Assembly: GCF_044704955.1 (NCBI RefSeq)
Contig: NC_091989.1
Location: 85,312,001-85,376,000, forward strand
DNA: 64,000 nt
Origin: Pristiophorus japonicus
Taxonomy: Eukaryota
Reading direction: 5' to 3'
A program made the translations under genes and the position numbers. The notes under the pieces are model-generated. The model saw only the letters and a list, made by a program, of their open reading frames with translations, did not search any database and had not been told where the DNA came from. Positions 13,734-56,181 of the stretch are shown piece by piece. Positions within the stretch are counted from its first letter, which is position 1. Every line of letters starts with the position of its first letter.

Positions 13734-13910
13734 TTAGCGGAACCTGATTTTTGTACAGATACCCTCTACTGCTGCACCTCTTTGGGTTGTTGTCCGAAGT
13801 TGAGCATACTCTGTGTTCTTGTCCTTAAGTTTGAGCTTTCCCGCGTTCTTGGAGCCACTGATTTCGAGAACGGCATACGTTAGCTTGTTATCAGCTCTCG
13901 CTTGCTTGCT
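13734..13910 (-). CDS. Gene A exon 7 (last coding exon): cytoplasmic tail with ITIM LTYAVL and ITSM-like TEYAQL
   Basis: Acceptor ttgactccacag|AGC, phase 0; SKQARADNKLTYAVLEISGSKNAGKLKLKDKNTEYAQLRTTTQRGAAVEGICTKIRFR*. Confidence 0.8.
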   Translation of the reverse strand, partial: SKQARADNKLTYAVLEISGSKNAGKLKLKDKNTEYAQLRTTTQRGAAVEGICTKIRFR

Positions 13911-14097
13911 CTGTGGAGTCAACGTTTGGAAATATCGTCAGCTCGTTGTTTTTATCTGTGTGCACTAACAAGGCCCATTAGAAAATAACATTTCTTTTTA
14001 AATGACACATGTGAGTGCGACCACATTTATTGCAGTGCACCTTGAACCTTAATTCTACAGGGGTCATATATGTCTCTGCTGAGTTTTTCAGCCGTAC

Positions 14098-14199
14098 CTG
14101 CGCGTAAACTGTCCGTTCCTCTGTGCGTATAACTATTGCAGTGAAGTTGGAACTGGTAAAATCTAAGGCGGCTTAAGGCGCTTGGGCATCCGTTGCTCC
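14098..14199 (-). CDS. Gene A exon 6: cytoplasmic phase 0-0 exon with an in-frame TAA at the expected Tyr (AP*AAL) and TVYAQ
   Basis: Acceptor ttttgcatttcatgaag|GGA; donor CAG|gtacgg; 102 nt; GATDAQAP*AALDFTSSNFTAIVIRTEERTVYAQ. Confidence 0.65.
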
Positions 14200-14867
14200 C
14201 TTCATGAAATGCAAAACATCAGATTATGGTTGTTCTATTCTAAGTAGAATACGAAATTGAATGAAGAAAGAACATAATATTGATGTCTTTTTCCCAGGTT
14301 CAGGAAAATTATCTCATAACTAGGTCTCAAATAAAACTGCTTCACACTCCTCAATTGTGTTTGTGTAGATCACACTTATTGAACTCATTGTCTCACTATT
14401 TTTGTTCAAGGCGTTGAAACTTGCTGTGAACTGACTGTTGGCCGCCTCTCATACTTCACGAAGCGGCCATTCTTTACATGTGAGCTCAGATAGTGATTGA
14501 ATAGGAGATTCCACCAGGGAAGACAACCCAGCTCACTCCTTACATGTGCTCACGGTAAGTGCATTCACACTCACAGAATTTACTGCTGTCAGGAACTGAT
14601 CTCTTCCTTACTGGCCCTAGACTGTCGATTGAACTGCAAAGTGCATGTATTTTGAAGAACATTTGCGATGTTTCCACTAGTCTCCATTACAACTGCCATC
14701 TTCATTACAAGGGTTTAACATTTGTGTGATAACATGCGGTAAATTATATTGAAACATGAAAGATATGGGTACGAAATGGAGTTAGAGTGTAATTACATGA
14801 TTATAGAGCGACGAAGTACTTTCTTCCTTATTTGAAATGTTTCCGGGAGTGATGGTTTTAAACTTAC

Positions 14868-14911
14868 CCGCTCTTCATGATGGTCTGAACTCTCCGCAGA
14901 GCTCCCTGCTC
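14868..14911 (-). CDS. Gene A exon 5: short juxtamembrane cytoplasmic exon
   Basis: Acceptor tttattcctag|GA; donor CGG|gtaagt; 44 nt, phase 1 to phase 0; (G)AGSSAESSDHHEER. Confidence 0.7.
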
Positions 14912-15452
14912 CTAGGAATAAATGAAATTAGTAATCCTCCGTGAAAATATGCATTCCATTTTTTTTCAATTTTTAAAGGCATTCCGGTAGATTTTGTTAA
15001 AAGTTGAGATTGTAATTTGGAAAATCAAACTCCTGCAGTATACAGAATCTGAAAGTGAATTGAGTAGTCCAGCAGTAATCTTAATCTACCGGGGAAATTC
15101 CATTAAAAAAAAAAGGTGGTGAAAATCGGAAGGTGTCATATAGGGCAGCCAGTTTTACACACAGTTGAGAATCTACTCCTTCGTGTTTGAAGCTCGGCCG
15201 CCCACAGACTTACATTTCACAAAATGCAGCTCCAACCAAAGCGATTGGGCTGCAATTATGGCACCACGATGCAAAATGTAAAGGTAAATCCATTAATTAT
15301 ATGAAGAACTAGATTTATCGTAGTAAATTCATTAACATGCTCAGGATCCTAACAATATATAGCTGTTAGCTGATGATCGATTTATTAACCTGTTACTTGG
15401 TCGTGCCCACTCTCTATCTAAAATGAAGTGAACACACTGGCATATTTCTTAC

Positions 15453-15566
15453 CTCTCCTTGCCTTAAGGTATAGCCGAATTCCAATGATGATAACCAGCA
15501 ACAGAAATATAAATCCACCCACCATACATCCATAAATGAGTATGTGGTTGAAAGTATTGTTATCTC
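15453..15566 (-). CDS. Gene A exon 4: transmembrane exon
   Basis: Acceptor ttacctggcag|GA; donor G|gtaaga; 114 nt; (G)DNNTFNHILIYGCMVGGFIFLLLVIIIGIRLYLKARR, a hydrophobic helix followed by a basic stop-transfer stretch. Confidence 0.85.
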
Positions 15567-16309
15567 CTGCCAGGTAATATAAAAACGCAAGAATAACTTT
15601 TACATATGGATATTGTTCTTCAATCAGATGATTTTATGACTAAAGCAATACGTTTCATCAGTGCTGTAATGACATGGTGTGCATCTGCAATATTGTGCAT
15701 TTCTGTCTGCAGCTTTCTATATGATCAAATGTTCACCTCCAAACTCGTTCCACAGAAAGTCCCAAAGATCAGTGGCTTGGGATTAGAAAGTAAGATTACA
15801 TCCCGGGGATAATGAGGTTGATGCAAATACATTAAATAATATTAGAAAGTAAAATCGCATAAGGCGGAGACAAGCACTAAAAAAATTGAATATTAAAATG
15901 TGACAATCATCCTTCTGCAACCATCAGGCTGAATTTCACAATGCATGCCATCAAAAGATTGATAAACGCGGATATTGTAACAGTTTTTGGAAATAAATTG
16001 CTTTATTTGTACAGTTTCTACTTTGTAAGTATAGTAGACTTATGCCATATTTTAATGACATAATACAGTATTATCAAATTACACATCACAGTCGATTTAT
16101 GCTCCGTGTGAATTCAAAATAAACCAGTGAGTGAATACACGCACCTTGGCGCTCACTCCCATTCGCTGGGAGTTCGGTCATGACTGCGTGTCTACACGAG
16201 AGGTTTACCTCTGGTGCGAATTGAATTGGCTTCCTACTGATGCTAAACTGGCGTAAATGAACTTATTTGTCTACAGTTCATTGTGTTCGTGAGAATGCCG
16301 GAACATTAC

Positions 16310-16618
16310 CTATGTTCGATATCGGATCAATGAATGCCTCACTGGCTGGAGCCGGGAGTGTCAGGTGAGAAACTTGACAAGTATAAACAGCCCCGATTCG
16401 GTCTTGCTGTGTTTCCTTCAACAGGCTGGAAACTTGATACAGTCCGTTCATGTTCAACGTTGTGCTTGTCTCTATGCCGATCGAAATCTCAATTCCATCT
16501 TTAAACCAAGTGAGGTTGAGAGTCTCCGGGTAAAATTCAACCGTTTTGCACACGAGATACAGAGCAGTGGAGTTTAATTCATATACTTCCGAGAAAATCA
16601 TCAGTGGAGTTGGCGGAA
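16310..16618 (-). CDS. Gene A exon 3: Ig C1-set domain
   Basis: Acceptor tttttctacag|TT; donor G|gtaatg; 309 nt, phase 1-1; LVCKTVEFYPETLNLTWFKDG...GLYQVSSLL...YTCQVSHLTL (C1 signatures FYP, W-x-K-D-G, Y-x-C-x-V-x-H). Confidence 0.92.
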
Positions 16619-18031: not shown

Positions 18032-18352
18032 CGGAGACAGAGATCGTTGAGCCTGTTCCATTTACAATACTGCCTCCCAGGATTCTCACTCCACAGTAAT
18101 AGACTCCAGAGTCCCACGCACTGATATTTAGGATATGAAAGGCGGCTCCTCCTTGTTTATAAAGGAGAAATATTTTCCTGCTGTCGGAGGCTGTTTGCAG
18201 AAAGTTAGTTTCGCCAAGTTTCCACCAACAAACACTCACATCTGAGTTATCTTGAAAAATAGGGAATGTGCAATAGAAGGTGATGTTTGAAAGAATGAGC
18301 ACGATCGTGCTTTCAGGAGCTTGGGAGACTTGGAACTGAGCCTCAATAGCAA
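18032..18352 (-). CDS. Gene A exon 2: Ig V-set domain with a J-like G strand
   Basis: Acceptor cctgacag|TT; donor G|gtaagt; 321 nt, phase 1-1; VSQAP...ITFYC...CWWK...DSGVYYCGV...NGTGSTISVS. Confidence 0.92.
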
Positions 18353-18476
18353 CTGTCAGGAAACATAACCGTAATTTTAAGTAAAACTTAAAGTAGGAAT
18401 GAGGGATATACAAGTAACAGGATATAAAATGAGGGAGAGGAAAAGAAGAGAAACCCAGAAAAATAGCAGAAAATAC

Positions 18477-18531
18477 CTGTGCAAATAATCCCGAGGACGC
18501 ATATGACCAGAAATGCAGAGTGCACAGCCAT
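18477..18531 (-). CDS. Gene A exon 1: signal peptide of a SIRP-like VJ-C1 receptor
   Basis: ATG at 18531; MAVHSAFLVICVLGIICT; phase-1 donor ACAG|gtattt; 124-nt intron to the V exon. Confidence 0.82.
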
Positions 18532-18964
18532 ATTGAACAGGCAATCGTCCCCTTTGCTGCGAATAACCACGGTTCTTTGGAAAAAAAATTGTTTGCACAT
18601 AATGTCAGAAAATAACACCCAATATGAAAAGACAGAATTGGAGCTGGAAAATGATGCACTGATTGAAGTGCGGAGGGTTACTTTCCCCGAAGCTCCATTC
18701 GGTCGGAAGTGCACCAGCTATTCAATTCCAACTACACAGTAACTCCGCAGCAAATCCACGTGACTTACCAGGTCAGAATTATATATTTAATGAGTAGTGT
18801 GCATCCGCTGGAAATAGTTCAGCTCTTGGGTGCAATTGAATACGAGGGCGAAAACTGGATGGTGTTGCAGGAATTAATATGCTGTCAAAATCAAAGATGA
18901 AGTCGCATCAGAAGAAGCATCGGCGACTAAATGTAAAGTGATATCATTAGCAACAAGTTAGCTT

Positions 18965-19250
18965 TAAAAGGAAAAATACTGCAGATTCTGGAAATCTGAA
19001 AAAAACAGGACATTTTGGAAATGCTCCGCAGGTCAGGCAGCATTTGATGAGAGAGAAACTGATTTATGGTTCCAGGTCGATGATCTTTAATCAGAACTCG
19101 ACAAGTTAGAAATGTAATAGCTTTTAAACAATTGCAGGGGCAGGGAAAAGGTGGCGGGAAGGAACTAACAAAAGTGAAGTGTTGTAATAGGTTGGAAGAC
19201 AAAAAGGATTAAATAACAAGGGATGATGGTACAAGGCAAAGGTGCGTGGT
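18965..19250 (-). mobile_element. Penelope-like terminal-repeat fragment
   Basis: Matches the reverse complement of 34148-34255 (gcaggtcaggcagcat...gagaaactga). Confidence 0.55.
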
Positions 19251-19499
19251 AATTGACAAATAGAGAAATAAAACTTGGGCAACTTTATTTGCAAAATCAA
19301 AATGCTCTGTTTGGATCAACTTGATAAAATGGGTTGATTGCTGATTGGTTCCTTTGGGGAATTCGATACACCCAGCAGCAAAGTGTAATTCGAGGCATTA
19401 TGACTGCCGACTCCAAACAGACAGTGCTCACTTGAACCACAGCTTATATTCGTGGTTTAAGACCTTCTCTCAACCCAAAAAAATATTCCTGCCCCCACA

Positions 19500-19695
19500 G
19501 CCCAATTGCTTGACCTGCCCAGCTGCACCCCGCAAGTTTCTGACCTCAACCCAAAATTTCTATCATTCCCCTCAAATAATTCCGACCAGCCCGCTACTCT
19601 AGTTTCTGACCTCCTCCCAAGTTTCTGACCTCTCGCACCATACCCCCACCGCCCGCCCAAGTGCCTGACCTTCGCCCCGCCACGTTTCTCACCTT
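19500..19695. repeat. Degenerate short tandem repeat, core caagtttctgacct
   Basis: About 6 irregularly spaced copies in a C-rich context. Confidence 0.55.
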
Positions 19696-19779
19696 CTCGC
19701 CCTGCCATAGTTCAACCCACATGGATTTATAACCTTCTCCTCCTAAAATGTTCCTGATCTTACACTTGCAAGAACCGAA

Positions 19780-20170
19780 TCCCTCTTCCCAGAATTCCCT
19801 CCCTCTCTCCCTTCCGAACCCATCTCCCCAGTCACTCTCTCTGCCAACACTCTCTTTCCCCCAAATTTTTCCCTCGCCCAGTTTCTCTCTTTCCCCCAGA
19901 GCCTTTTTCCCCCGTCTCTCTCTCCACCATTCTCGCTCCCCTCCTCCTTATCTGTCTCCCCATTCTCCCTTGCTGCCTCAGTCTCTCTCTCTCTATCTAT
20001 CGCCAGTGTATTTCTCTCCCCCAGTGTCTTTCTCTGCCCCGTCTCTCTGTCTGTCTCCCCCAGTATCTTTCTCTCCCTCAGTCTATTTCTTCCTTACTTC
20101 CCCCATTCTTTATCTCTCTCTCTGCCACCTCCCCAGTCAAACTTACTCCCACAGTCTCTCTCGCTCGCAA
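19780..20170. repeat. CT-rich low-complexity polypyrimidine tract
   Basis: tctctctc and ttctctcccc runs. Confidence 0.8.
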
Positions 20171-21384
20171 CTTCGAATTTTTCTCTTTCAGAAGGCCACA
20201 GAAATATTTGCGTAAATAATCACAGAAATATTCTAGGCAAAAGTTCTAGAGATAATGCAAAAGCCTTATAAGCAGCTCCAGTTCCAGGCTCGAGTCATGA
20301 TGAGTGAATCGACTGCGCATGCACAAACAAAAAAAGGGGGGGGGGGTTGGTCCAAGGTGCACATGCGCACAATGACAAAACATGTTGCAAATAATAGATT
20401 CGATCAAAGATGCGTCTAGAGCTGCAGAAAATTACAAAAACAGAATGATTGGCAGTAGCTGCTGTCGGACAAAATGACAGCGGTACTTCTGATCTCAAAT
20501 TGTTGAAATATTTCGCCTTGATTGTGTGGTTATAATGACGGCTAAACTGTCATCCATCGCAGTTATTATCCTCTGAGACTTACAGTGACTTCTGGAGTCC
20601 ACAAATGTGCAGCTAAATGTGAAAATCCAGCAGTTGCTGGCAGTGATTCAAGGCATTTTACCGGGGTACTCTGTTGAAGTCCCCGCAGATGGCAACCATT
20701 GCAAAACAACTGAACTGATGAGAATTTGCCCTTTTAGGATAAAATACTGCAAATAAAAAATCCGAATTAGTTAGCTTGTTCAATAATGTGTAACTAAGTT
20801 TTTAATGGTATACTGAATCAAAGTAGCAAGGTCACATTTCAGAACAGATGCAACGGAGACGGAGAAACTGTGATGATTGAAAAGAGTGCTTGAAAACTCA
20901 ATGTCAATGACGCAGGTTTGCTGTTCCTCCTCCAATGCACTCAAGGCAAACTAAGATATATTATTTGCCGCACAAGGCACGAGACAATCTTGTGCCATTG
21001 TCCCCATCACTATGCAGGGACCCCGCTTCTGTCCCGACCACTGTAATGGCACATTGAAAGAAGTTAACATTAGCAGCTAATGTCAGCTCCACAAACCCCA
21101 GATAAGATGATGAATGACGGAAAACAATTAAGTTGAGCAGCATGGAAACGTAATTGTGTTACTCAGCGCCATGAACGTCTTCTAAGCAACAACCATGCAT
21201 TTTAACTCAATCAATATGTTTAATTTTTATACGTGATCCTTGTAAACGTAGTAAACCCCAACGCTCTTTGCACACAGTTATCACTCCATTCAGATACCAA
21301 TAAACAATGTAAGACCAATCGCATCCAGCTTGCTTCTAATTTAGACGATTATTGCAGACTATGAGTATCACATTTATGATTCTT

Positions 21385-21870
21385 GAATCATAGAATCATA
21401 GAATCATAGAAGTTTACTGCCTGGAAGGAGCCCATTTATGTCCAACGAGAGGCTATCCAGCCTAATCCGACTTTCCAGCTCTAGTTTGTAACCCTGCATG
21501 TTACAGCACTTCAGCTGCACATCCAAGTTCTTTTTAAATGGGGTGAGGGTTTTTGTCTCTAAAACCCGTTTAAGCAGTGAGATGGAGACACCCACAACCC
21601 TCTGCGTGTAAAAATGTCATCGCAAGTCCCCTCTAAATCTTCTACAAATTACTTTAAATTTATGCCGCCTGTTTGTTGACCACTTTGCTAAGGGAAATAG
21701 ACCCTTACGATCCATTATATTTTGGTCCATCTTAATTTTATAAACCTCCATGTGGACTTATCTCAGCCTCCTCTGTTCCAATGAAAACAAGTCCAGCCTA
21801 TCTAACCATAGCTTCGATTCTCAATTCCAGGTCACATCTTCCTAAATCTCCACTGTATTCTTTCCAGTAC
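21385..21870 (-). mobile_element. CR1 LINE 3' end fragment
   Basis: (gaatcata)n tail; similar to 39300-39800 and 35016-35300. Confidence 0.8.
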
Positions 21871-21949
21871 ATTCAATCAGTTTCTTAATGAGTTGAATGA
21901 GACTTTCAAGTCATTATCTGGCATTTAATTGCAAGAAGAAATGGTACTT

Positions 21950-22590
21950 AATGCAGAGGAAGGAAATTTATATCAGCACCTTTTATTTATATAATCACTT
22001 TAACGTATTAGTACATCTCAAGACACTTTACGGGAGTATTATAAAACACAAATGTGACAGCGATCCACATAAGGAGTACTTAGGGCAGTTTGCACAAAGT
22101 AATAGGTTTAAGATTCGTCTTCAAGGGAAAGGGAGGGAGATAGGTGGAGAGGTTTTGCGAGGGAATTGTAGAGCTTAGGGCCGAGACAGGCATAGACCTA
22201 GACACCAATGTTTGCGTGATTATAATCAGGGATGCTCACGAGGGCAGAATTGAAGGAGCACAGTTATCTCGGGGGCAGGGAGTGGGCGTGAGAGGTTGGG
22301 GCTTGAGGATATTGCAGAGAAAAAGGAGAGGTGAGTCCCGGAACGGATTTGAAAACAAGCATGAAACTGAAGCTTACCCGGGAGCCAGGGTAGGCCAGCA
22401 AGCACATGGCTGATGGGTGACCGGACTTGGTGCGAGTTTGTGCAGCAGTGTTTTGGATGACCAAAGTTTGCATATTTTAGAAAGTGGGAGGCCAGCCAGG
22501 ATTACATTGGAATAGTCAAGCGTAAATGTAACAATGGTATGGACGACGGTTTCAGCAGTGGATGAGCAGAGGTAGGGGCGGAGGCGGGGA
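21950..22590 (-). mobile_element. L2-type LINE 3' fragment
   Basis: Minus-strand LVIQNTAAQTRTKSGHPS...LVFKSVPGLTSP resembles the L2 ORF2 C-terminus; homologous to 30950-31450. Confidence 0.7.
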
Positions 22591-25500
22591 AGAGTGTCAA
22601 CTGCATGACAGTTAAATCTTAAGATAAGAAAAATAACATCAAAGAACGAGTGATAGCATAAAGTGTTGGAAATGAACAGAATTGTAACAAAAAGTTAGAA
22701 ATAGATATTCTAGCAGAAAAGCCTTTCTAGCCTCTGAGGCTTCAGCCGCCAATATGTGCCATCAACTATATGGCTGCACTGAGTTTGCATTACAGTTAAA
22801 TCCCAGGTAGGATTTGTGGTCACTCGCAAAGTGACGCTGATCTCCACTGACCTTGAAGAAAGCTTCACACGAAGACTTAGCGATGTCGATATCAGCAATG
22901 TCAGCTCACTCGGCCTGTTTCAATCTGGCGCTAGATCAAGCGAACCACCAGCGTCCACCAAGGGCGACATCGTCAAGCAGGCTACGCAACCAATAACATT
23001 CAAGAATTCTCACAGACAGCGAAGCAGGAAGTAAAATGCACATTTTAAAAATTACTGTCTATTCATTTGCAAAGAGTGAAATAGGGATTCGAACATACAC
23101 ATAGGACTAAGGGTGAATGCTGAAATATCATTAAAAAACTTTGAAACACATTAAAACCTTGTAATTCTTAATGATATTAATTGAATTATTAGACATTCCA
23201 CAAATAAAAAATTAGTTTTTCAGGCATAGAACACTTGTTCAGCAGTCAGTTCGCCTTTACAAATACCTGACTTAAGTGTTTAGGGGCATTTGAAGAGCGA
23301 AGTTCCAACGTAAAAGTTGACATTTTCGTCAGTTGATGTGAATTGAACTGATCGTTGGCTCTGTCATGTTCGACAGTGCAACCTTTAGTGGAGCAGGGGT
23401 GGCTCACTGCATTGTTCGAAACTAGCTGCACATAAAATCAAATCCTGAAGTTGCTGTTATTTTCAAAGGGTTCGCTGCCATTACCACTGCAAAATGTGGA
23501 CCTATGTCCTCCATATGGAAGAAATGTCTCCAAATGTGGGTTATAGCATGCCTGACGCAATCCACTCCCTTTCAGCTGCCATCCTGATAGAACACCATCA
23601 TCCGGATGTTATTAATTCCATTGCTTCATATTGCCAACCCAAAGGCAAGCACTCGTGGTCGTTAGTCCATTGACAGGAAAGGAGAAACACTGTATGAAAC
23701 AGAATTCAGAAGTTATCAGGCGGCAGAGAGAATGGAGCACGTAAACGGGAACTGGATCAAAGGCTTCAAAGATTTAAGGCCATAACTGAAACATATGATG
23801 TCACCGATCTCACAGGTCAGCTTTCAAAGAAACCTGTTCCACCTGTAATGTATTTTACAGCAGAATGGCGCCAGCGTGTGAAGTGTCATTGGGCAGGGTT
23901 TCTGCTCAATGTATCTTTCTAGTCGTGGATGGAAACTCAAAATGGAATTCCAAGGATCTCCCCATTTAATGAAAGCTTTGGATTAATGTCTGCATCTTGA
24001 AAGGCATATCATAGCTTAGCCATGGATCCTTGGAAAGTGGAAAGTAGATATGGTTTTGCAGATCTGAACGCTTGGGTTGTCCATGTAGAAATAACTTTTC
24101 TGTCAAAGAATCTTTCTAGAATCTGTGGCCTGAGAATCAAGTCTTCATGTGGCCTATAAATTTGACATGAAAGCAGAATCATGTAACCTTATCTGTCAGT
24201 TGCCATATCACAGGAACAGGTCAAGATTTTCCATGGTGTGATTTGGGCATACCACCTGCAATGATCCACCTCAACAAACTGACCGTCAGATCATTGCCAT
24301 CTCAGTGCACTCGAGTTCATTTACAGGAAGAGCAATGGGACATCTTCTTCAATTTGGTTACTCAGGTGTTACATTAAATTTCATGCCTAGTAAATGGGTT
24401 TAAGGTGAATGGTATTGAGAATAATAAATATTCTGGAAAAGGATAGGACGGAGATTGGGCTGAGCCTTCAATGTGGATGTGTTGTCAAATATAGCTTAAG
24501 GATTCGGGTGAGTCCATGATACATGCAACCGAATTACTGATATTAATGAACACGTGTTTCTCGGCAGAACATTGCTCGTATTTCCTTGTCCACGTGGATT
24601 GACCGCATTTTGCTGCAAAACAATGTCTATTTGACATTCGTTCTCCCTTTTGCGTGGTGTTTTCTCTTTTTTCTGCGGCTGGGTGAATAATTAAGTAGGC
24701 TTCAGTTGGTAAAATTTAACCTCGAAACCAGAGCTGGGACATGTACAGCATTATCACACTTGTCCAACCAGTAGAATCTTGATTTCAGAATTCCAAATTT
24801 ATGCTCTATGTGTTGGACGAGCAATATTTTACCCACATTGAGCTTTATTTTGAGGAATGCTGACGAGGTTCAGTAACTGAGTTTGCAAAGTATAACCATA
24901 AACTAGGTCTCCGCCAATTGCACATCTTCAGTTCTATGTGATTGGACATCAACCAGTTTGTTGGCTCCATTAGTGGTCGTGCTTTTTATTTTCAGGGGTT
25001 TGCACTAGTTCCCAACGTATTTAAGACAGTCGATCAAGAGCAAATACGTGAAATATGAGGAACACTAGTTTCCTTTTTCCGAGTTGATACTACTCGTTCG
25101 AAATCCCATACTTCCTAACCAGCTAAAATAAGCTATCCACTGAATAGTATTCATTCCATCTTGCTTGAAAATAACCTATGAATGTGATACGACGTAGCCT
25201 TCTTTAGCATGTTAATGCTAACCCTTTAGAAAATGAATTTTTTATCATTTTGGAAATTTTGGGATGTAAGGCAGTAGCGTCCAGCACCTGCCTGTTTAAA
25301 AAATATATATGCCTGAAAGCACTTCTTCTACCTTGTATTTTCCATTCGCCATCTGAGCTCCAAAATAGTTCAAGGTGGGCTGTAAGGAGAATCCACTCAC
25401 ATTAGCGGTCGGATACTTTCCGAATGGATAAGGTAGAGTTAAAATATTAAGTTGATCCGTTGGCTAGTGCGAGCACTTAAGTTATTTTTATAAACTGACG

Positions 25501-28082: not shown

Positions 28083-28570
28083 GGGCTGACGACTGGGACC
28101 AGCGGAAGTCCGAGCAACCAGCATCGTGAGAGGAGCGGTGCGGGAGGATAAAGGGCAGTGACAGCGACTGGGAGTGGTGACAGTCTGAGCAGCCAGCATC
28201 GCAAGATGAGCAGCGTGGGAGGATAAAGGTTGGCGTCAGCGGCTGTGAGCGGCGGCATCCAAACAGCCAGCATTGCAAGAGGAGCGGTGCTGGAGGATAA
28301 AGGGCAGTGGCAGTGACAAGGAGTGATAACAGTCCGAGCAGCATCACGAGATGAGCAGTGCGGGAGCATGAAGGGCGGTGGCAGCGAGTGAGGGCGGCAG
28401 TAGTTGGAGCTGCCAGCATCAGGAGAGGAGCGGCACAGGAGGATACAGGGCAGCAGAAGCGACTGGGAGTGGCAGCAGTCCGAGCAGCCAAAATCGCGAG
28501 TGGAGGATAAAAGGCGACGGCAGCGAATGGGACCGACAGAAGGCCGAGCAGCCAGCTGGTGCAGAGGTGG
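28083..28570 (+). repeat. Tandem array of about 6.5 units of 64-75 bp at the 5' end of a CR1 element
   Basis: Recurrent gagcagccagcatc...gaggagcggtg...gaggataaagggc; the gaggataaagg core recurs near 28144, 28220, 28293, 28364, 28439 and 28503. Confidence 0.85.
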
Positions 28571-42947: not shown

Positions 42948-43560
42948 ACTGTCATCATCATAAGTAGTCCCTCGTATCAAAGCTGACTTGCTTCCAAAAA
43001 GGGATGAGTTCACAGGTGTTTCAATGAAGGACCTAATATTCCACGTCCCGAACTACATCCTAAAGGATGGAAGATGCCTGCGCGTGGATTATTTTAATGT
43101 GTGGTGGTCGTTGCACACCAGACACCACACGGGCTTCATAGAACTACGTCTTTGTCCAATGGCAAGCATTAATCAAGATGACTGAAGAGCAGATCTGCCG
43201 CGTGGCCCTAGTGTGCACATATATCGCAGCGTGAGCTGGCCTGTGTTTCCCCTGGGACAACGTGTCTTCTGGCCCCAAAATAAATCCTCACTGCATGATC
43301 AATAGGCGCTCCTGCACCGCAACCTCGCTGCTCCTGCTGTACTGGCCGAAGCTCAAATCAGCAAACTGGACTATGGTGACGTCCAATCCACTCGCACTCT
43401 TCACTGTCTTTGACATCCTGCATTGGCTCACGCTGTACCTGGCAGTGGTATGCCGCCACTCTGCTCCCAGGGCGAGTCGCTGCTCCTTTTATGTTCCTGA
43501 CCTGCCGCAGATGTTCCCTCACAGGTCACAGCCACCATGCTGCTGCACACCGCCACTCAT
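42948..43560 (-). mobile_element. Non-autonomous RTE-tailed element (SINE-like)
   Basis: catcatcataagtagtccctcg...gacttgcttcc matches the reverse complement of the RTE 3' end at about 50521-50569; the body has no RT similarity. Confidence 0.6.
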
Positions 43561-45719: not shown

Positions 45720-47480
45720 TATACATTGGAGACAGTTCAGAAAAGGTTCACTCTGTGCAGTTTTCGGCTCATTAACTGAGGAATGATTCATGAGAAGAAG
45801 GGGTTGAATTATGAAGAAAGGTTCAGCAGGTTCGGCCTATATTCATTGGAGTTCAGAAGAATGAGAGGTGATCTTATTTAAACATATAAGATACTTAGCA
45901 CGTTCGACAAGCTAGATGCAGAGAGGATGTTTCCATTAATGGGAGAAACTATGACTACGCGGCACAATTTAAGAATTAACCACTGAGATGAGCAGGAATT
46001 TCTTCTCTCAAAGGGTCATAAATCTGTGGAATTCTCTGCCCCCGCGAGATTTGGAGGCGGGGTCATTGATTATATTTAAGGTGGAGATAGACAGATTTTT
46101 AAACGATCATGTTTGACAAATCTTCTAGAATTTTTTGAGGATGTAACTATTAGAGTGGATAAGGGAGAACCGGTGGATGTGTGTATTTGGAATTGTAAAA
46201 TACTTTTGACAAGCTCCCACACAAGAGATTAGTGTGCAAAATTAAAGCATATTGTATTGGGGGTAATATATTGACGTGAATAGAGAACTGGTTGGCAGAC
46301 AGGAAGCAAAGAGTAAGAATAAAGGGGTCCTTATCAGAATAGCAGGCAGTGACTAGTGGGGTACCGCAGGGTTCAGTACTGGAATCCCAGCTAATTACAA
46401 TATACATTAATTATTTGGACAAACGAATTGAATGTAATATCTCCAGATTTTCAGATGACACGAGGTGGATGCTACGAGGCTGCAGAGTGACGTGAACAGG
46501 TTAGCTGATTGGGCAAATGCATGGCAGATGCAGTATAATGTACATAATTAAGAGATTCTCCAATTTGGTGAAAAAAACACGGAGGCAGATTATTATCTGA
46601 ATGCTGGCAGATTATTAAAAGGGAAGGTACAACGAGACCTGGGAGTCATGGTACATCAGTCATTGAAAGTTGGCATGCAGGTACAGCAGGCGGTGAATTA
46701 GACAAATGGCATGTTGGCCTTCATAGCGAGCGGATTTGAGTATTGGACCAGGGAGGCCTTACTGCAGTTGTACAGAGCCTTGGAGAGGCCACACCTGGAA
46801 TATTGTGACCAGTTGTGGTGTCCTAACCTGAGGAAGGACATTCTTGCTATTGAGGGAGTGCAGCGAAGGTTTACCACACTGAATCCCGGGATGGCAGGAC
46901 TGACATATGAAGGAAGACTGGATCGACCAGGCGTATATTCACTGGAATTTAGAAGAATGAGAGGGCATCTCATAGAAACACGTCAAATTCTACGGGATTG
47001 GACAGGTTAGATGCAGGAAGAGTTTTCCTGATGTTGTCAAAGTCCAGAACAAGGTCTCACAGTAAAAGGGTAAGGGTTAAGACAAATAAGACCTAGATGA
47101 GGAGAAACTTCTTCACGCAGAGAATTTTGAACCTGTGGAATTCTCTACCACAGAAAGTTATTGAGGACAGTTCGTTCAATATATTTAAATGAGAGTCAAA
47201 AGGAATCTAGTGGTATGGTGAGAAAGCAGGAATTGGCTCCTAAATTTGCAAAAATGATCTGCTATTTAGTGGTGCAGACTCGAAGGGCCGAATGGCCTAT
47301 TCCTGCACCTATTTTCTATGTTTCTATGTTTCTATGTTTCAAGAGTTATGGGGGCGTGCAGGGAAGTGGAGCTGAGCCCAAAGTCAGATCAGCCATGAAC
47401 TTATTAAGTGGTGGAGCTGGCTCAAGAAGCCGAATGGCCTACTCCTGCTTCTATTTCCTATATTCTTCCATTCCTATGTA
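45720..47480 (+). mobile_element. CR1 3' fragment split by a further nested CR1 (46108-47340)
   Basis: 3' end sequence stops at acagatttttaaacgat and resumes at 47341; the nested copy has an RT 3' half (MLAFIASGFEY...RMRGHLIET) and a (tttctatg)n tail. Confidence 0.8.
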
Positions 47481-48349
47481 ACAAGTTAAAGATCTTATCA
47501 GATTATACGAAGAGGTTTATATTGTTGCGAAAAAGAGTACAAATCCTGAAGACTGGGAGCATATCAGAATTAAACAAAGGATCACCATGAAATTGATAAA
47601 TAAAGTGTGGAAAATGATATGAGATTAAATCCGGAAGAGAAACAAGAATCGATTGTATAAGATTCTATATATAGGCCAACATGTACAGAGGAGTCACATA
47701 GAGCCAGAGACAAGATTAATCATGATGGGTAATCAGGAAATGGCAGTCATTAGAAACATACTTTGTAACAGTCTTCACAATAGACAACACCAATTTATTA
47801 GCACAATTAGTGGGGAACCAAGTATTTGGTGCAAATAAGGACTGAAATACATTAGTAAATATATTGTACTGGATCAAGTCATTGGATTAAACAAATCCCG
47901 TGGACTTCGCCGACATCCCAGGGTTTAATAGTGGTAGCTATAGAGATATGGCATGCATTGGTTTTGATCTACTGGATATCCCTCCATTCTGAAATGCTAC
48001 TTGCGGATTGGAAGGTAATAATACAACCGGGCTACTTTAGAAATGAAGGAAAGAGACAACAGGGACTATAGGTCACAGACTGACATTAGCTCTGGGGAAA
48101 ATGCTGTAATGATTAGGGACGGGGTAACGGAGCACTTAGACAATAATAATATGATTTGTCATAGTCAACGCAAATTTATGGAAGGGAATCGTGTTTAACA
48201 AATCTGATGATTTTCTTTTAGGTTGTAACTAGCAGGGATGCTTCGGACAACCTATGCATTTAGTGTATTTGGATTTTAAAAAGTATTCGGTATTGTACCA
48301 CACAAGAGTTTAGTTCACGCAATTAGTGCTCATGGGATTGGAGTAACTT

Positions 48350-50569
48350 CTTTGACTGTATGGCGGAATGAATACCAGGAAACACCAGGGCTGGTTTGGA
48401 GATAATGACCAGGAGCGCCAAGAGCTAATAGATAGCAAGCGCAGGTCAATTCTAAGCCTTAAATAACAACCCAACTCAAGAGCAGCAAGGCAGCATTACA
48501 GATGGCTTAAGGCTGAGCTCCAACAATAAAACTCAGGTCCTAAAGAACTGAGGTGGATTTAGAAAGCACAGGAGATATAGCTGACAGCCATGATGTGCAA
48601 GGATTCTTCACCGCAGTCAAGGCCACCTACGGCCCAAATACACAAGGCCCCACCCCACTGCCGGCCAACAACGGGGAATCACTCATCAAGGACACCGAGG
48701 AAATCAGGGCCCGCTGGAAGGAGCACGTCGAAGATCTCCTCAATGAAGACTCTGTCTTTGACTCGAGTTTCTTCGACCACATCCTGCAGCATATTACCCG
48801 CCACCACAACTTTAAAACCTAGCAGCGCACGAGATAGAAAATGCCAAAAGTCAGGTTAAGAACAACAACGTTGCGGGAACGGATGGAATCCATGCTCAGG
48901 CACTGAAGCATGGCGGAAACTCACTTTTGCTGCAAATGCGTGACCTCATCTCTCTCATATGGAGCTAGGAAAGCATGCCGGGAGATCTTAGAGATGCAGT
49001 GATCGTGACAATCTTTAAAAAATGGAACAGATCGGACTTGGCAACTACAAAGGAATCTCCCTGTTATCAGAAACTGGAAAGTCGTCAATAGAGTCCACCT
49101 CAATCGTCTTCTCCTAGTGGTTGAGTAACTCCTCCCGCAGCCACAGTGCAGATCTCGTCCGCTAAGGGGCAAAGCAGACATGATTTTTATAGAGTGAAAG
49201 ATGCAAAAAAAATGCACGGAACAGCACCAGCCTTTATACATGGCCTTCTTCGACCATACAAAGGCCTTTGTCACTGTCAACCACGAGGGTCCATGGAGCG
49301 TCCTCCTCCATTTAGGATGGCCCCAAATGTTTTTCACAATCCTTCTGCTCCACAATGACATGCAGGCCCTGATCCTTACCAACGGATCCATTACTGACCC
49401 CATCCATGTACGGAGCAGTGTCAAGCCTGGCTGCATCATGGCCCCAATCCTTTCTCAATCTTACTCGCTGGCATGCTCTGCCTCACAGTCAACATGCTCC
49501 CCGCTGCAGTGGAACTAAACTACAGAACCAGTGGGAATCTGTCCAAATTTCGTCGTGTCCAGGCCGGTCCAAGACCATCCCAGCCTCTGTCGTAGAGCTA
49601 CAGTACGCGGACGGCACTTCCATCTGCACACATACAGAGTCTAAACTCCAAGTCATATTCAACATATTCACTGAGGCATACGAAAGCACGGGTCTGATGC
49701 TAAATATCCGGAAGACAAAGGTCCTCCACCAACCTGTCCCCGCCGCAAAGCACTACCGCCCAGTGAGTAAGATCCATGGCGTGGCCCTGGACAACGTGGA
49801 TCATTTGCCGTACCTCGGGAGTCTCTTATCAACAAGAACAGACATTGACGACGAGATTCAACACGGCCTCCAGTTCGCCAATCTGAGGGAAGGAGTGTTT
49901 GAAGATCAGACCCTCAAGTCTGCCACCAACCTCATGGTCTACAGGGCTATAATAATACCCATCCTCCTGTAAGGCTCAGAGATATGGATCATGTACAGCA
50001 GATCATTAAAGTCGCTGGAGAAATACCACCAATGATGTGATCACACGATCGTGAAAATGCCCTTGGAGGACTGATGCACCAACGTTAGCGTCCTCGACTA
50101 GGCCAATATCCCCAACATTGATCAACTCTGCTGGGCAGGCAACGTTGTTCGCATGCCAGGCACGAGACTCCCAAAGCAAGCACTCTACTCGAAATTTCTT
50201 CATGACATTCTAGCCAAAGGTGGGCAGAGGAAATGTTACAAGGACACCCTCAAAGCTTCCCTGATAAAGTGCAACATCCACACTGACACCTGGGAGTCAC
50301 TGGCCAAAAAACGCCCTAGGTGGAGGAAGTGCATCAGGGAGGGCACTGAGCAACTCGAGTCTCATCGTCGAGAGCAGGCAGAACTCAATCGCAGGCAGCT
50401 GAAAGATGATATGGAAAACCAGTCCCACCAATCCTTTCTCTCAACGACTATCTGTCTCACCTGTGACAGTGACTGTGGTTCTCCTATTGGACTGTTCAGC
50501 CACCTCAGGACTCATTCTTGGAGTGGGAGGAAGTCTTCCTCGATCCCACGGGACTGCCTACGATGATGA
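48350..50569 (+). mobile_element. RTE-clade LINE, 5'-truncated, disrupted
   Basis: FFTAVKATYGP, IRARWKEH, LYMAFFDHTKAF, LQYADG, YLGSLLS, RLPKQALY, CTCDSDC..IGLFSH finger; (gat)n tail. Confidence 0.92.
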
Positions 50570-53500
50570 GTCATTGAATGATGGACAGAAAACAGAGTAA
50601 TTTACAAATGGGACATGTTTGTGTTGACTGGTGGTAACTATTGATGTTTATAATCTATATCGATGAATTAGATGAAGGAACGGAGTGTAATGTTTCCAAG
50701 GGTTGTGACTTTACAAATTTAAGTCAGAACATAACCATTGAGGAGAGTGCAAAGAGGGTGGAAGTGTATATAGACATGTTAACAATGACATGGCAAATGG
50801 AATAAACATTGCGAAGTGTGATATTATCTAATTTAAAAGAAAGAATTGAGATCCATAATATTTTTAAATGATGAGAGACTGGGAAAAGTTAGTATTCCTC
50901 CGGACCCGTATGTCCTTTTAAACGAACCACAGAAAGTTGACATACAGTTACAGCAAGTAAATGGTTTGTTATCCATTATTACAAAATGGCTTGACAATAA
51001 AAGTAAATAAGTCTTTCTACAATTAGATACAGACTGGGTGATACCACATAGGGAGCACTCACTGTAGTTTTTGGATCATTAGCTGAGGAATGTTATATTT
51101 GACTAAGAGGGCGTGCAATGAAGGTTCAATAGACTGATTCCTGGGATGAGGGGGATGCTTTTTTTTAGAAGAAATTGAGTAGACTATGCATATGTTTCCT
51201 AGATATTAGAAAAAAGGTGATCTCAATGAACCAGATACAAATTATGGTATGGCTTGACAGGATAGTTGATGGGTGTTTTTTTTGCCCTGGCTGTAAAATC
51301 TACAACTGGGGGTCACATTCGCAAAATAAATATTCGGCCACTTTGGCCTGATATATGAGGCCAAATTTATTTAATAAAAGGGCACCGACTCCTTGTAATT
51401 CTCTACCCCAGAGGGCTGTGGACGATCAGTCGTTGAGCCTATTCAAGACAGAGATTATAATAGAACCAAGACATGTGGGGCAAGTGCGAGAAGGTGAAGT
51501 CGAGGTAGAATATCAGCCATGATCTTATTGAATGGAGGAGCAGGTTCGACAGACCGGATGGCCTGCTCATGTTCCTATTGCTTAATTTCTTAGGTGTGAT
51601 AACTGCATACTCCATGGGCCAGTAGATATTGAGGAGAGGAAATGGAAAAAAAAATATCGAAGCGAAAATAAGAATTAAGGAGGAACAGTGAAAAAAACAA
51701 AGCACTTTGCGATTTAAGAATATGTTTAATTTATTCCACTGCAACTAGATATAAAATATCCACATTTTCCTCCTCGTCCCCTATTAACACATGGACATAA
51801 TTAATGTTGTGCAATTTAGGTCTAACGTCGATAGTTTGGCATTAAAGGTGAAGGCGGGGCCCCTGAAAGTGTAAGGTGGGGATTTAAAATATACTGACTT
51901 TTTCAGAAATGGAACAATTTAAATATTTAAAAATCCATCCAATCATATGTCTATTACATTTATTATCGCAAAAATATTGAGGAATATTTAAACAAAACAC
52001 TAGGTTACTAAGTTGCTTGGCATCGGATATTTGTTGTGTCTGTAATTATTGCTATCAGGAGATTCTATGTGGTATTATTCTGTTCGAATTGAACGCATAA
52101 CTTGCATTTTATATGGCGTTTAAAATTATCCCAGTGTACTATTGATTGATTTTTGAAATCAGAGAGTGGTTCTAATCGAGTGAACGCGGTAGGGAAGTTG
52201 CACACAGCGAGAACACACAAACAGGAAATGGCACGAATGATAAATATATCTGTTTCACAAAGAAGTAATGTTGAATAGGCCCATGGGACAACTCTATGTT
52301 TTACTTCCAATAGTGTCATGCGTTCTTTATATTTGCCAAAATTACGTCAAAAGACAGGTGGACGTCATTGGTTAATCTTGCTTTTTCCCATACACATTTT
52401 ATGGGCTTTTGCGCTGTAACTTCCAGCCAGCCAACTATTTGAAATGTGCAGCGCCCTCCACAGTGTATCTGGGACCTGTATGAACAGGGAAAGCGATTGT
52501 ATATCCTCAAACCAATCATATTGACGAATCATTAGTGAGCAGTGCAGAGTGCGAACTAGAAAGCGTCACTCAGTATATGAAATTCCATGGGACAGCAATG
52601 GTACGAGGCTGCTTGCTGTCGGAAGCTTCCGACATATTTTTTTTATTACAAAAGTACATGGAGGATCAAACAATTGTGCTCCGAGGCTGAGATAGTCAGC
52701 CCAGTGCAGAGGACCACACATCGCAGGAACATATGGGCATTGTGTGATAACTTGGGCTTGGACCACCAATGAACATGGAGTATTCGTATTGAAAGTAACG
52801 GTGAGTTCTGTGTGTATGGAGCTCCCATTACTATGAATGGCAATACCTCCGAAAAACAGAAACGCAATAAATAAATTTTTAAATATCAGATATTTAAAAT
52901 TACTTGAATTTTAATTAAATTAAATGCTTTCGAAAAATTGTTATTGTTTATTAAAATATGTTTTAATAGTGTTAAATATAAACTTACCTTAATGGACAGG
53001 GATTTTATCAAAACGACAGAAATAACGTTTAATTTTTCTATCTTTAAAAACTCTTATTCTGTTGAAAACAGGCCTTATATCTGCTTTTGTCAGGCATAAG
53101 AGTTTTGCGGACAGTCGCTGGGCAGGAATTATGCAAATAGCCCAAACCTCCATCCGCAAAGGCCCTTCTCCCAGGGATGCCTGTGATCTGTCTCTACCCA
53201 CAGCTCACTGGGTAGAGAATTTCCAATGATTCACAACCCTCTGAGAGAAGAGATTCCTCCTCATCTCCGTTTAACTGATGCTATGTCCATAAAATTAAGG
53301 CACTTTACACAAGTCGGCACAATTGCAACAAGTTAACAAACAATGGTATAATCCTCTTCGACAATTCATGGTTGGCTAGTTATTTCATCGCCTGCAGGTT
53401 TGAAGTCAATTGTGACTGTTTCTACTCAACAAGCTGGGCCATTACTGCAACAGCTTATGTGAACAGCTCTCTTCCCAAATCGAGAAACATGTTGGGAGGT

Positions 53501-53698
53501 AGCGCAAAGTGGGCGATAGACAAACTACAGCCCATTGTACAATCCCGGCGATTTATTTGCCTTTGACTCCAACTAATTCATACCCCACGTTTCCTTAAAC
53601 TGCAAGATAATATGCTACGTCATCGTAACGCATCTATCTGAATAGCTGAATTTCGAAACATCAGTCTCATTGTTCCATGCAGCATTGAGCAGTTTTTG

Positions 53699-53750
53699 AT
53701 GTTGCTGAGAATGTTGGCAATTGCTGTGCTGCTGCGGATTATCTGCATTG
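53699..53750 (+). CDS. Gene B leader exon
   Basis: MLLRMLAIAVLLRIICI, then G|gtatgt; the IIC ending is shared with the gene A leader. Confidence 0.75.
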
Positions 53751-53892
53751 GTATGTATGATTTATGTACTCGAATCACTCCCATAAAAAGTATGTGTAAA
53801 GCAGCATTCATTTCTACAATGTATTTTCTTTCATATTGCTCCATCCTCTGAAGTTGGTAATACGATTAATACAAATCTAATTTTTTTATCAG

Positions 53893-54213
53893 CAACCATT
53901 GATAGTTCGTTCAGTGTGTCCCAGGTCCCCGAAAGGATGATTTCGATCAGAGGTTCGAACGCCAGCTTCATGTGGAACTTTCCCTTATCCCAGGACAACA
54001 CCCCTGCAAACGTACATTGATGGAAAGGGGGTGAGAATCAATACCTTCATATAAAGTCAGATGACAGAAAGCGATTCTCTCTCCAAAGTAAAGGAGCTGG
54101 ATTCTTCCAACTGCTGAATGTGAGATTTCAGGATTCGGGGGTTTATTACTGCACAGTCATCCGTCAGGGAAGAAGAAGTGATAATGGAAGTGGATCATAT
54201 TTAACTGTCAGTG
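53893..54213 (+). pseudogene. Gene B V exon: B-strand Cys codon is TGG (53973) and C-strand Trp codon is TGA (54018)
   Basis: 321 nt, the same length as the gene A V exon; FSVSQVP...NASFMWNFP...NVH*WK...DSGVYYCTV...NGSGSYLTVS. Confidence 0.88.
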
Positions 54214-54929
54214 GTAGGTGTGAACACGGAGAAAAATAGACCATTACTATTGTATATGTATATAAATGCATCGCATATTTGTCACGGTTTATGTATCTGT
54301 CATATACAACCATGTTTAAAGGCGACTAAAGCTGTATGGAACATATTTTCAGGCTTTAACATGTTTCCGCTTGAGCTATTTGACATTCGATGGATGTGGA
54401 TTTTAGTCAACGATTATGGACACACGTAATATAAGCGAGCAGAAGGTTACTTCAAGGGGTTTGTGAAGATTAGGAGTGGAATGAAAAGGTACATTTTGAG
54501 TGAGAAAGCATCTGCTGTCTCTTAAAATCGAGAGTGCTCAGGAATATCCATGCATTCATTTTGATAGAAGGTTTTTTTTTCCAGAAGCATCTATCTGTTC
54601 TTTTGCTTCAGCGAGACCCTCAGCAAATCACGCACATTTCTGCTGCCTCTGAAGAAAAACTAATATCGCAGTGTAATTATTTAATGGTTTCTCATTCGCA
54701 GCAGTTATTCACAACTATTCCATTCGATTGTGTTAAATCTGTAGAGCATGCAATGCACAGCGACCCATTATAAAACGAGAGGGTCCAATCAGTTTTTGAC
54801 ATGGCAACATGAAAAAAAATTCCGATTTTCAATATAGTCCAAGTAAGTCAATTAACACAAAGCAAAATCGTGTTTAAATCGACTAACCTAGTCCGGTAAT
54901 ATTATTTTACTACATTTTCTGCTCTGCAG

Positions 54930-55244
54930 CCTCGCCTACTCCATTAAAAATTTTCTCAATGGATAGTGGAAAAGATTATTCTGCGCTGCGGACACTCGTG
55001 TGTCGAACAGCAGGATTTTATCCAGAGAATCTCACCATCACTTGGTATAAAAATGGTATCGAAACTTCAACTGGAATAAACACCACCAAACGGTGGAATA
55101 GACAGGAGGGGGTGTATGAAGCTTCGAGCTATTTGCAAGAGTTACAACTAGTCCGAAATTTGAGTGTTTATACTTGTCTCGTGTCGCACGTCTCTCTCCG
55201 GACTCCAGCCAAAGCGATCCATAAGGTTATTGCATATTACAGAG
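54930..55244 (+). CDS. Gene B C1-set exon (open frame)
   Basis: ctctgcag|CC...AGAG|gtaaat; LVCRTAGFYPENLTITWYKNG...YTCLVSHVSL. Confidence 0.88.
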
Positions 55245-56068
55245 GTAAATCTGTTAATTTACTTGAAATCTCTGTCTAAAATGATGAGCATATTTTTGAA
55301 GGTCATGAGAAAGATGTCTTTTTGACTAACAGTAAAAATTTCTTGGACATTGCCGAAACTTAATACAACAACACGCATTCGGCTTCTGTGCCTGCAGCTA
55401 GATTCACACTTGGTGCGCCGCATCTTTCCATCTATTTGATATACTAGATCATCAGTTGCTCTCTCGTGACATATACATAGTTTTATTTATATTTCAAACT
55501 GCAGTATCTATGAGGGATATAATTATTGAATCCAAAACCCTACCTGTTAATTTTACAACTCAATTACGTGAAATCACACTTGTCACTGAGAACCATGGAG
55601 AGGATATAATAGTTCAGCATTTGTTAACTTGAGCCATCGATTTCAGATTTAAGCTCTCCGATAGAAAACGAAGCTGAAGAAAAGCATATGCATTGCCAGC
55701 GGATAGTATATTTTATTATTTATTAAGTGACCGCAACATATCTGTCCCAATATTGAAGGAATTTCAATTTTTGCCATAATTTAACTTATCTGCTGAACAC
55801 ACAGTGATACGTTGTCGCATGGCAAAGCATGTTCGAAGAAGGTCACAAACGATTCAATTTAATTTGAACCGCGATGCAATTTTTATCTACTGCATTCTGC
55901 TATTAAAATAAGCGCTTTAATTAACAACATCTATAAAACGCGGTCTTTTGGCTTTTTACTCTGGATAATCAAAAATGAATAAACTTGATCTAATAACTGT
56001 GATTAAGATGTGATTTGAAAGCAGTTTCTGAGCCGTACATTCTCGAATGTAAATGTTTTGTTTTGCAG

Positions 56069-56181
56069 GCACTAATCATATAGCCAACTATTTATTGATT
56101 TCTGGATGCACAGGGACTGCATTGCTATTCCTTTCGGTGATAATCATTGTGTTATGCTGTACAACTCAAAGGATAGCTTAA
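56069..56181 (+). CDS. Gene B transmembrane exon ending in a stop
   Basis: ttttgcag|GC; (G)TNHIANYLLISGCTGTALLFLSVIIIVLCCTTQRIA*; no charged residue in the helix. Confidence 0.75.

Follow-up and report, generated by a model that had tools for sequence, protein, structure and literature searches.

A conserved V-C1 receptor gene with an inhibitory-type tail and its probable pseudogene paralogue in the shark Pristiophorus japonicus

The 64,000-nucleotide stretch of the Pristiophorus japonicus genome analysed here (assembly GCF_044704955.1, contig NC_091989.1, positions 85,312,001 to 85,376,000; hereafter the window) contains two divergent genes, each composed of a split leader, one variable (V) domain, one C1-set domain and one transmembrane (TM) segment. 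The question raised by this locus is whether the two genes form a pair of receptors, one inhibitory and one short-tailed, as the preliminary description of the sequence had proposed, or whether their histories and fates are separate. The reading that we prefer, with a probability of about 0.7, is that gene 1 is an intact inhibitory-type receptor of a conserved shark orthogroup, that gene 2 is an old paralogue and a probable pseudogene, and that both belong to a V(J)-C1-TM family of the cartilaginous fishes.

The window has no runs of N, and tblastn searches of its whole length with all candidate exons detected exactly two V, two C1 and two related TM exons; therefore, two genes exist here, set among repeats. 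All searches were made with single exons or with database proteins, never with a joined exon product. The start codons are located at 18531 (minus strand) and 53699 (plus strand), with 35,168 bp between them. In both genes, a leader split in phase 1 is followed by a V exon of 321 nt and then by the C1 and TM exons; every junction is of the AG/GT type, and phase 1 is kept through leader, V, C1 and TM. The head-to-head layout with a distance of about 35 kb, as described earlier, was thus recovered in full. The exons of gene 1 are as follows.

18477..18531, minus strand: leader exon, MAVHSAFLVICVLGIICT plus the first base of the next codon; phase 0 to 1, ATG at 18531, GT donor, hydrophobic signal peptide.
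18032..18352, minus strand: V exon of the germline-joined VJ type, 321 nt; AG/GT, phase 1 to 1.
16310..16618, minus strand: C1-set exon, 309 nt; Pfam C1-set 3.5e-13; AG/GT, phase 1 to 1.
15453..15566, minus strand: stalk/TM exon, DNNTFNHILIYGCMVGGFIFLLLVIIIGIRLYLKARR; Cys at the membrane edge, hydropathy 2.8; AG/GT, phase 1 to 1.
14868..14911, minus strand: cytoplasmic exon 1, AGSSAESSDHHEER, matching AGRSVESSGRHEER of Heptranchias P0001; AG/GT, phase 1 to 0.
13734..13910, minus strand: last exon, SKQARADNKLTYAVLEISGSKNAGKLKLKDKNTEYAQL...FR followed by a stop, also written SKQARADNKLTYAVLE...NTEYAQL...FR; AG acceptor, phase 0, with an immunoreceptor tyrosine-based inhibitory motif (ITIM) and a motif resembling an immunoreceptor tyrosine-based switch motif (ITSM).

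This model agrees exon for exon with P0001, a predicted protein of Heptranchias perlo. Gene 1 is therefore read as an intact six-exon gene, provided that a stop-bearing tail exon of 102 nt, discussed below, is skipped. Its V domain has Cys23, Trp41, DSGVYYC and the G strand NGTGSTISV, and 17 of the 18 family-invariant residues are conserved, the exception being Leu at Gly39. The V exon scores 29.3 bits against Pfam Ig_2, above the curated cut-off, and 21.8 bits against Pfam V-set, under the cut-off of 26. In the same exon (18230-18295), an additional Cys is recognized in VCWWK, where the other members have Tyr.

The C1 exons of the two genes reach 50.2 and 52.4 bits against Pfam C1-set, for which the cut-off is 21. 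The hallmarks of this domain are 13 residues between the Cys of the B strand and the Trp of the C strand, (F/Y)(F/Y/H)P, and xVxH after the F-strand Cys (Hatherley et al., PMC2785349); in both genes the gap is 13 and FYP is present, together with CQVSH in gene 1 and CLVSH in gene 2. The V exons of both encode DxGxYxC and a GxG-type G strand, N-G-(T/S)-G-S-x-(I/L)-x-V, and end in NGTGSTISV-S (gene 1) and NGSGSYLTV-S (gene 2), after which the GT donor follows. This strand aligns with FGTGTTVSVS, the J region of a T-cell receptor (TCR) alpha chain. No exact recombination signal sequence (RSS) was found in the 64-kb window, and a relaxed RSS scan of the window gave only background-level matches, none of them at the V/J junction, that is, at the position of complementarity-determining region 3. 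Because each V exon is complete through the G strand and no RSS accompanies it, the two are germline-joined VJ-C1-TM genes, and the earlier statement that a J-like strand lies inside the V exon with no complete RSS stands after both scans. A perfect heptamer (CACAGTG/CACTGTG) is present at 18017-18023, a few bases into the intron 3' of the gene 1 V exon and outside the coding end, with a nonamer matching at merely 6 of 9 positions at a 13-bp spacer; it is consistent with chance, as there are about 0.5 relaxed matches per kb of the window.

In place of the Phe/Trp of the J motif FGXG, both genes have Asn within an N-G-T/S sequon (18048-18062 and 54183-54197), and this Asn is nearly invariant family-wide. 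A glycan at the sequon would block pairing of the VH/VL type via that face, and the arrangement suggests that the V domain of the family does not pair in the antibody style. The AlphaFold model of the orthologue P0001 has a confident V and C1 ectodomain plus a TM helix, and its fold matches are non-discriminating, with immunoglobulin (Ig) light chains and PD-L1 tied at Z of about 14.6-15.1.

How widely such genes are distributed was seen from searches of predicted proteins. The word search with the V exon of gene 1 used the open reading frame (ORF) at 18009-18659, which comprises the V exon and read-through into the leader intron (residues 103-210 were scored), and it found predicted proteins in Heptranchias at 78% identity and in Mustelus at 67% and 53%. 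The same kind of search with P0001 yielded 52 proteins, and with a 20-sequence profile 65. Sharks, rays and one chimaera, Callorhinchus, account for all of these proteins; even the lowest-scoring of the 65 has E=1e-54, and several matches per species share one chromosome-sized contig. An exhaustive profile search gave 248 cluster representatives at E<=1e-30, and names were looked up for 20 of its top 150 matches. Among these 20, the proteins of two-domain size (about 200-375 residues) are all from cartilaginous fishes, except for one SIRP-like protein of a lungfish. The other outsiders are SIRP-named proteins (from lungfish, frog, bird and bat), an unnamed lizard protein, a turtle pIgR-like protein and a scallop hemicentin; shark IgNAR is also among the matches named. 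The nearest named outsiders checked are the SIRPs of lungfish and tetrapods.

Judged from these sequences, both genes are members of a multigene family of germline-joined V(J)-C1-TM receptors of the Ig superfamily that extends across sharks, rays and chimaeras, and the SIRP-like cartilaginous-fish family that had been anticipated is borne out. Its members are already predicted in public annotation, under misleading names. These automatic names vary among PTPNS1 (SIRP-alpha)-like, tapasin-related-like, Ig lambda-1 light chain-like, NCR3LG1-like, CD276 homolog and MHC-like, and one of them is given as 'tyrosine-protein phosphatase non-receptor type substrate 1-like'. We found no description of this VJ-C1 family in the literature searched. 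So, of the earlier suggestion that the family might be uncharacterised, the part concerning the literature holds, but the databases already contain its members.

Within this family, the position of gene 1 is clear. Trees were built separately for the V and C1 domains, and branch support is given by the SH-like approximate likelihood ratio test (SH-aLRT). In both trees gene 1 belongs to a clade of five rows (SH-aLRT 99 for V and 97 for C1), the other four being one each from Heptranchias, Heterodontus, Mustelus and Scyliorhinus torazame. The V/C1 identities of gene 1 to these four orthologues are 79/69, 78/67, 67/60 and 67/57%, and its V exon is 78-79% identical to those of P0001 and P0004. From these trees, gene 1 is best described as a one-per-species shark orthologue and not as an outcome of local expansion. 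The stronger conservation of V than of C1 points to a fixed ligand, and away from diversification driven by pathogens.

The cytoplasmic tail of gene 1 contains LTYAVL (an ITIM) and TEYAQL (ITSM-like), with a Tyr-Tyr spacing of 23 residues, as against 24 in the SIRP-alpha of bat and bird. The last exon matches the hidden Markov model (HMM) of the tail module at E 1e-19 and is 70% identical to the tail of P0001, and the TM is 59% identical to that of P0001. The last exon and the first SIRP-alpha motif pair are also colinear, with 31% of 42 residues identical; DNKLTYAVL...NTEYAQL in gene 1 is aligned with DNNDITYADL...HTEYASI. Between the two cytoplasmic exons there is one further exon.

14098..14199, minus strand: degenerate tail-module exon, GATDAQAP(stop)AALDF...EERTVYAQ; 102 nt, AG/GT, phase 0 to 0, tail-module HMM E=5e-5.

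The TAA of this exon occupies the position of the ITIM Tyr of the tail module (AQAP-stop-AALDF versus NKLTYAALDL), and the exon is not present in the orthologue P0001 (isoform X2 of Heptranchias). Its inclusion would truncate gene 1 before both signalling tyrosines, and a full-length tail must, on the predicted frame, require that it be skipped. It may be a dead exon or an off switch controlled by splicing. TVYAQV was considered as a third signalling tyrosine and rejected, as the exon is phase 0-0 with a TAA and is missing from P0001. Because the TVYAQ exon carries the TAA, the frame-compatible tail of gene 1 has two tyrosine motifs, not four. The contrast of tails drawn in the preliminary description, namely, a Tyr-motif tail in gene 1 and a stop soon after the TM in gene 2, was accordingly retained with only two frame-compatible motifs.

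Gene 1 is most likely an inhibitory, SIRP-alpha-like, SHP-recruiting receptor with a conserved V domain, as far as function can be read from such motifs. The conserved V domain would bind a conserved ligand, which is probably endogenous. Src-family kinases would then phosphorylate both tyrosines of the tail, the tandem SH2 domains of SHP-1 or SHP-2 would dock on the phosphotyrosines, and the docked SHP-1 or SHP-2 would dampen activation, as in SIRP-alpha.

The situation of gene 2 is different. Its exons are as follows.

53699..53750, plus strand: leader exon, MLLRMLAIAVLLRIICI plus the first base of the next codon; phase 0 to 1, GT donor at 53751-53752.
53893..54213, plus strand: V exon, 321 nt, disabled; G strand NGSGSYLTV retained.
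54930..55244, plus strand: C1-set exon, intact; Pfam C1-set 7.1e-14; AG/GT, phase 1 to 1.
56069..56181, plus strand: stalk/TM exon, ending in LLISGCTGTALLFLSVIIIVLCCTTQRIA and a TAA stop; AG acceptor, tail of 6 residues.

A point overlooked in the preliminary description is that the V exon of gene 2 is not open. The codon for Cys23 is TGG (Trp) at 53973-53975, and that for Trp41 is an in-frame TGA at 54018-54020; both sites (C46 and W61 of the alignment) are invariant in 20/20 family sequences, and a single Cys remains in the V domain. The TM helix (LLISGCTGTALLFLSVIIIVLCC) is uncharged, and the stop lies 6 codons past it. A scan with the tail-module HMM found no tail-module exon downstream of gene 2 (56181-64000). 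In both trees the terminal branch of gene 2 is long (0.46 for V and 0.48 for C1) with no supported partner, and there is no close orthologue among the 224 retrieved proteins, where identity reaches about 60% at best. Gene 1 and gene 2 are 44% identical in V and 53% in C1, and by these values are old paralogues. Gene 2 is thus most likely a pseudogene and not an activating partner of gene 1, its loss of function being judged from the lesions. As for the birth-and-death cluster that had been envisaged, the dead gene 2 fits such a process, but the conserved, one-per-species gene 1 does not reflect local expansion.

Gene 2 might still be functional by one of three routes: the TGA and the replacement of Cys by Trp may reflect errors of assembly or a single defective allele, skipping of the V exon may yield a C1-TM protein that lacks V and is comparable to pre-T-alpha, or translation may continue through the stop. 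The leader, splice sites, C1 exon and TM exon are intact, and skipping of V would be frame-neutral, since the leader and the C1 exon are both in phase 1. However, two independent lesions affect the two most invariant residues of the V domain, the branches are long in both trees, no close orthologue exists among the retrieved proteins, and there is neither a tail exon nor a TM of the adaptor type. We therefore regard a functional gene 2 as improbable.

The same evidence bears on the question of pairing. If the locus encoded a working pair, gene 1 would be the inhibitory receptor and gene 2 its short-tailed activating or decoy partner for one shared ligand, and the common layout, the divergent orientation and the contrast between an ITIM tail and a tail of 6 residues agree with this. 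Genuine pairs occur elsewhere in the family. In Heptranchias, P0056, with an ITIM tail, and P0061, with a short tail and a charged TM, are 85.5% identical over 228 residues of the ectodomain, and these sequences indicate that inhibitory/short-tail pairs occur within the family in that species. The charged TM of P0061 represents a second TM type, (P/H/C)RF(V/I)LGFLVILILT..II(V/M)(D/E)H, found in at least ten predicted proteins of six shark species (carriers are P0003, P0004, P0028-P0030, P0034, P0052, P0061, P0062 and P0067); this type has Arg towards the outer and Asp/Glu towards the inner end, and its tail is very short. By their sequences, these Arg/Asp-TM proteins are inferred to be better candidates for activating partners than gene 2, possibly coupled to an adaptor. 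No TM exon of this conserved type exists anywhere in the window, and the further possibility that gene 1 or gene 2 uses an alternative exon with a charged TM was rejected, as none was found in the window.

Compared with the 85.5% of P0056/P0061, the ectodomain identity of gene 1 and gene 2 (44% in V, 53% in C1) is low. The two genes also stand in separate parts of the V and C1 trees, the V exon of gene 2 has a stop and no Cys23, its TM is uncharged, unlike the conserved Arg/Asp type of the short-tailed members, and the start codons are separated by 35 kb of repeats. Because the ectodomains are dissimilar, the V exon of gene 2 is dead and its TM is uncharged, gene 1 and gene 2 do not constitute a working pair; the proposal of a functional pair is already contradicted by the sequence, and we consider it very improbable. 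In this respect the preliminary description, which had presented the two genes as paired receptors, has to be abandoned.

One detail of gene 1 recalls the second TM type. Read-through of the C1 donor of gene 1 (16284-16309, minus strand) gives GNVPAFSRTQ and then a stop, which resembles the NVPNFSQT that precedes the Arg/Asp TM in P0004, the model of the Heterodontus orthologue. This stretch may be left over from an alternative 3' end, or correspond to a secreted form.

The preferred reading, an intact gene 1 and a disabled gene 2, leaves the origin of the family to be considered, and SIRP is the first system to compare. Outside Ig, TCR, MHC, beta-2-microglobulin and tapasin, the C1-set domain occurs chiefly in SIRPs (PMC2785349). 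Like SIRP-alpha/SHPS-1 (PTPNS1), gene 1 carries a V domain at the N-terminus, with a J-like G strand, and a C1-set domain, a TM and a tail come after it; gene 1 also shares the motif pair (L/I)TYAxL...(T/S)EYAxx with a spacing of 23-24. At the family level, paired inhibitory and short-tailed members are also common to both. However, V and TM are separated by just one C1 exon in each of the genes here, whereas SIRPs have two C1 domains; gene 1 has one motif pair and SIRP-alpha has two; the short-tailed members have an outer Arg and an inner Asp/Glu in the TM instead of the single central Lys of SIRPs; and the V domain is not specifically SIRP-like.

In place of trees with TCR, Ig light chain, NKp30, tapasin, UrIg and PRARP, scores of profiles against PDB served as a proxy. 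Over contiguous V-C1, the family profile gives IgNAR 76 bits, SIRPs 72-74, Ig light chains 66 and UrIg2 58; when P0001 is used as a single sequence, the scores are 47 for lambda, 45 for kappa and 30 for D1-D2 of SIRP-alpha. The similarity of the gene 1 V domain to D1 of SIRP-alpha is confined to the framework-3/F-strand region, and the C1 domains of the family form a clade separate from D2 and D3 of SIRP (SH-aLRT 85). When the D3-TM-tail portion of bat SIRP-alpha is compared with the family profile, however, the score is 88.5 bits, as against about 40-45 for a lone C1 domain. The tail thus looks like the specifically SIRP-like part of the family, to judge by these scores.

According to one explanation, gene 1 and SIRP-alpha would be direct orthologues, the ligand of gene 1 would be CD47-like, and the SIRPs of bony vertebrates would differ in nothing but one duplicated C1 domain. 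In favour of this, SIRPs of lungfish, frog, bird and bat make up most of the named non-chondrichthyans among the 20 matches looked up, the tail runs colinearly with the first of the SIRP-alpha motif pairs at a matching spacing, many members are named PTPNS1-like by the NCBI pipeline, and the D3-TM-tail portion of SIRP-alpha reaches 88.5 bits against the family profile. Yet there is one C1 domain and not two, the V domain has just the framework-3 similarity to D1, the V-C1 profile scores of SIRP are on a level with those of IgNAR and Ig light chains, and the C1 clade stands apart from D2/D3; direct orthology is accordingly rated as distinctly unlikely.

Several observations weigh against the reading preferred here, and they concern both genes. 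Where gene 1 has Leu, 20/20 aligned family members have Gly39, in the A'-B turn (18230-18295), and the terminal branches of gene 1 are 2-3 times longer than those of the Heptranchias and Heterodontus orthologues, so that constraint on gene 1 may be somewhat relaxed. The signalling motifs vary among orthologues, with LTYAAF in P0001 and TEHAQL in Mustelus. Splicing of gene 1, skipping of the stop-bearing exon and expression are predictions from genomic sequence, the ectodomain is roughly equidistant from SIRPs and antigen-receptor chains, and the lesions of gene 2 are seen in one assembly only.

Another non-rearranging system with a similar layout is PRARP. PRARP genes are reportedly of the VJ-C1-TM-ITIM type, do not rearrange, and are said to exist in bony fish, amphibians, reptiles and birds; to our knowledge, PRARP has not been reported from cartilaginous fish. 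The present family could be the cartilaginous-fish counterpart of PRARP, the comparison being one of layout: a non-rearranging VJ exon, a single C1, a TM and an inhibitory, ITIM-type tail are features that both would share. On the other side, no ray-finned-fish protein is found among the 20 named of the top 150 matches, and the copy number is far higher here, with many paralogues per species. The chance that the two are counterparts seems small to us. PMC10751288 refers to PRARP as a VJ gene that does not rearrange.

In UrIg and UrIg2 of the elasmobranchs, too, the VJ is non-rearranging and encoded by one exon, the leader is split, and domains of the C1 type follow. UrIg is a secreted protein with three C domains, and UrIg2, which is single-copy, has nine or more (PMC12227049), whereas the family described here combines one C1 with an ITIM/ITSM tail and is represented by many paralogues in each species. 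UrIg2 is the top PDB match of the family profile in total score, 125 bits summed over three C1 domains, but its contiguous V-C1 score of 58 bits is under the 66 of Ig light chains. With Ig light chain, IgNAR and TCR, the family shares the V + C1 topology and the GxG J-type G strand, and Ig light chains are among its best fold matches (Z about 15). It differs from them in that the V exon is germline-complete with no RSS, in the Asn of the N-G-T/S sequon in place of the Phe/Trp of FGXG, and in a predicted signalling tail of its own, with no dependence on CD3 or CD79, unlike Ig/TCR chains.

The non-rearranging VJ-C1 genes NKp30, PRARP, UrIg and UrIg2 have been discussed as relics of antigen-receptor precursors (PMC10751288, PMC12227049), and neither of these papers mentions a single-C1, ITIM-tailed family. 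An old, multi-copy V-C1-TM family with SIRP-alpha-like tails, and with inhibitory and charged-TM pairs among its members, in the earliest-branching living jawed vertebrates bears on that debate and on the origin of paired innate receptors. It is conceivable, although in our view unlikely, that the single-VJ, single-C1 TM receptors of cartilaginous fishes are survivors of the proposed pre-RAG receptor layout and that SIRPs were derived from it by duplication of the C1 exon. If this were true, the family would link SIRPs, PRARPs and the rearranging antigen receptors, and the conserved orthogroups, in which V exceeds C1 in conservation, would point to self-ligand systems of ancient origin. Taken by itself, this locus is nothing unusual for the family. 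It contributes a conserved orthologue, in which the excess of V over C1 conservation is suggestive of a fixed ligand; it also provides a clear example of gene death and a tail-module exon that has been knocked out exactly at the tyrosine.

The remainder of the window is composed largely of repeats. The first part (1-12000) has about 60% G+C, as compared with 33-49% in the remaining sequence, and contains long ORFs with reverse-transcriptase and zf-RVT domains. Because of these reverse-transcriptase ORFs, the elements are of the long interspersed nuclear element (LINE) type, and the region is predicted to be one or more young, GC-rich LINE copies. The region between the two genes is as follows.

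18532..53698, no strand: spacer between the start codons, 35 kb, with LINE reverse-transcriptase fragments (RVT_1 matches) and a 75-bp tandem repeat.

In this spacer, tblastn and HMM scans detected no additional V, C1, TM or tail exon. The tandem repeat (28107-28505) has a unit of 75 bp in 5.4 copies with a match of 68%, and is located in a G-skewed part of the spacer.

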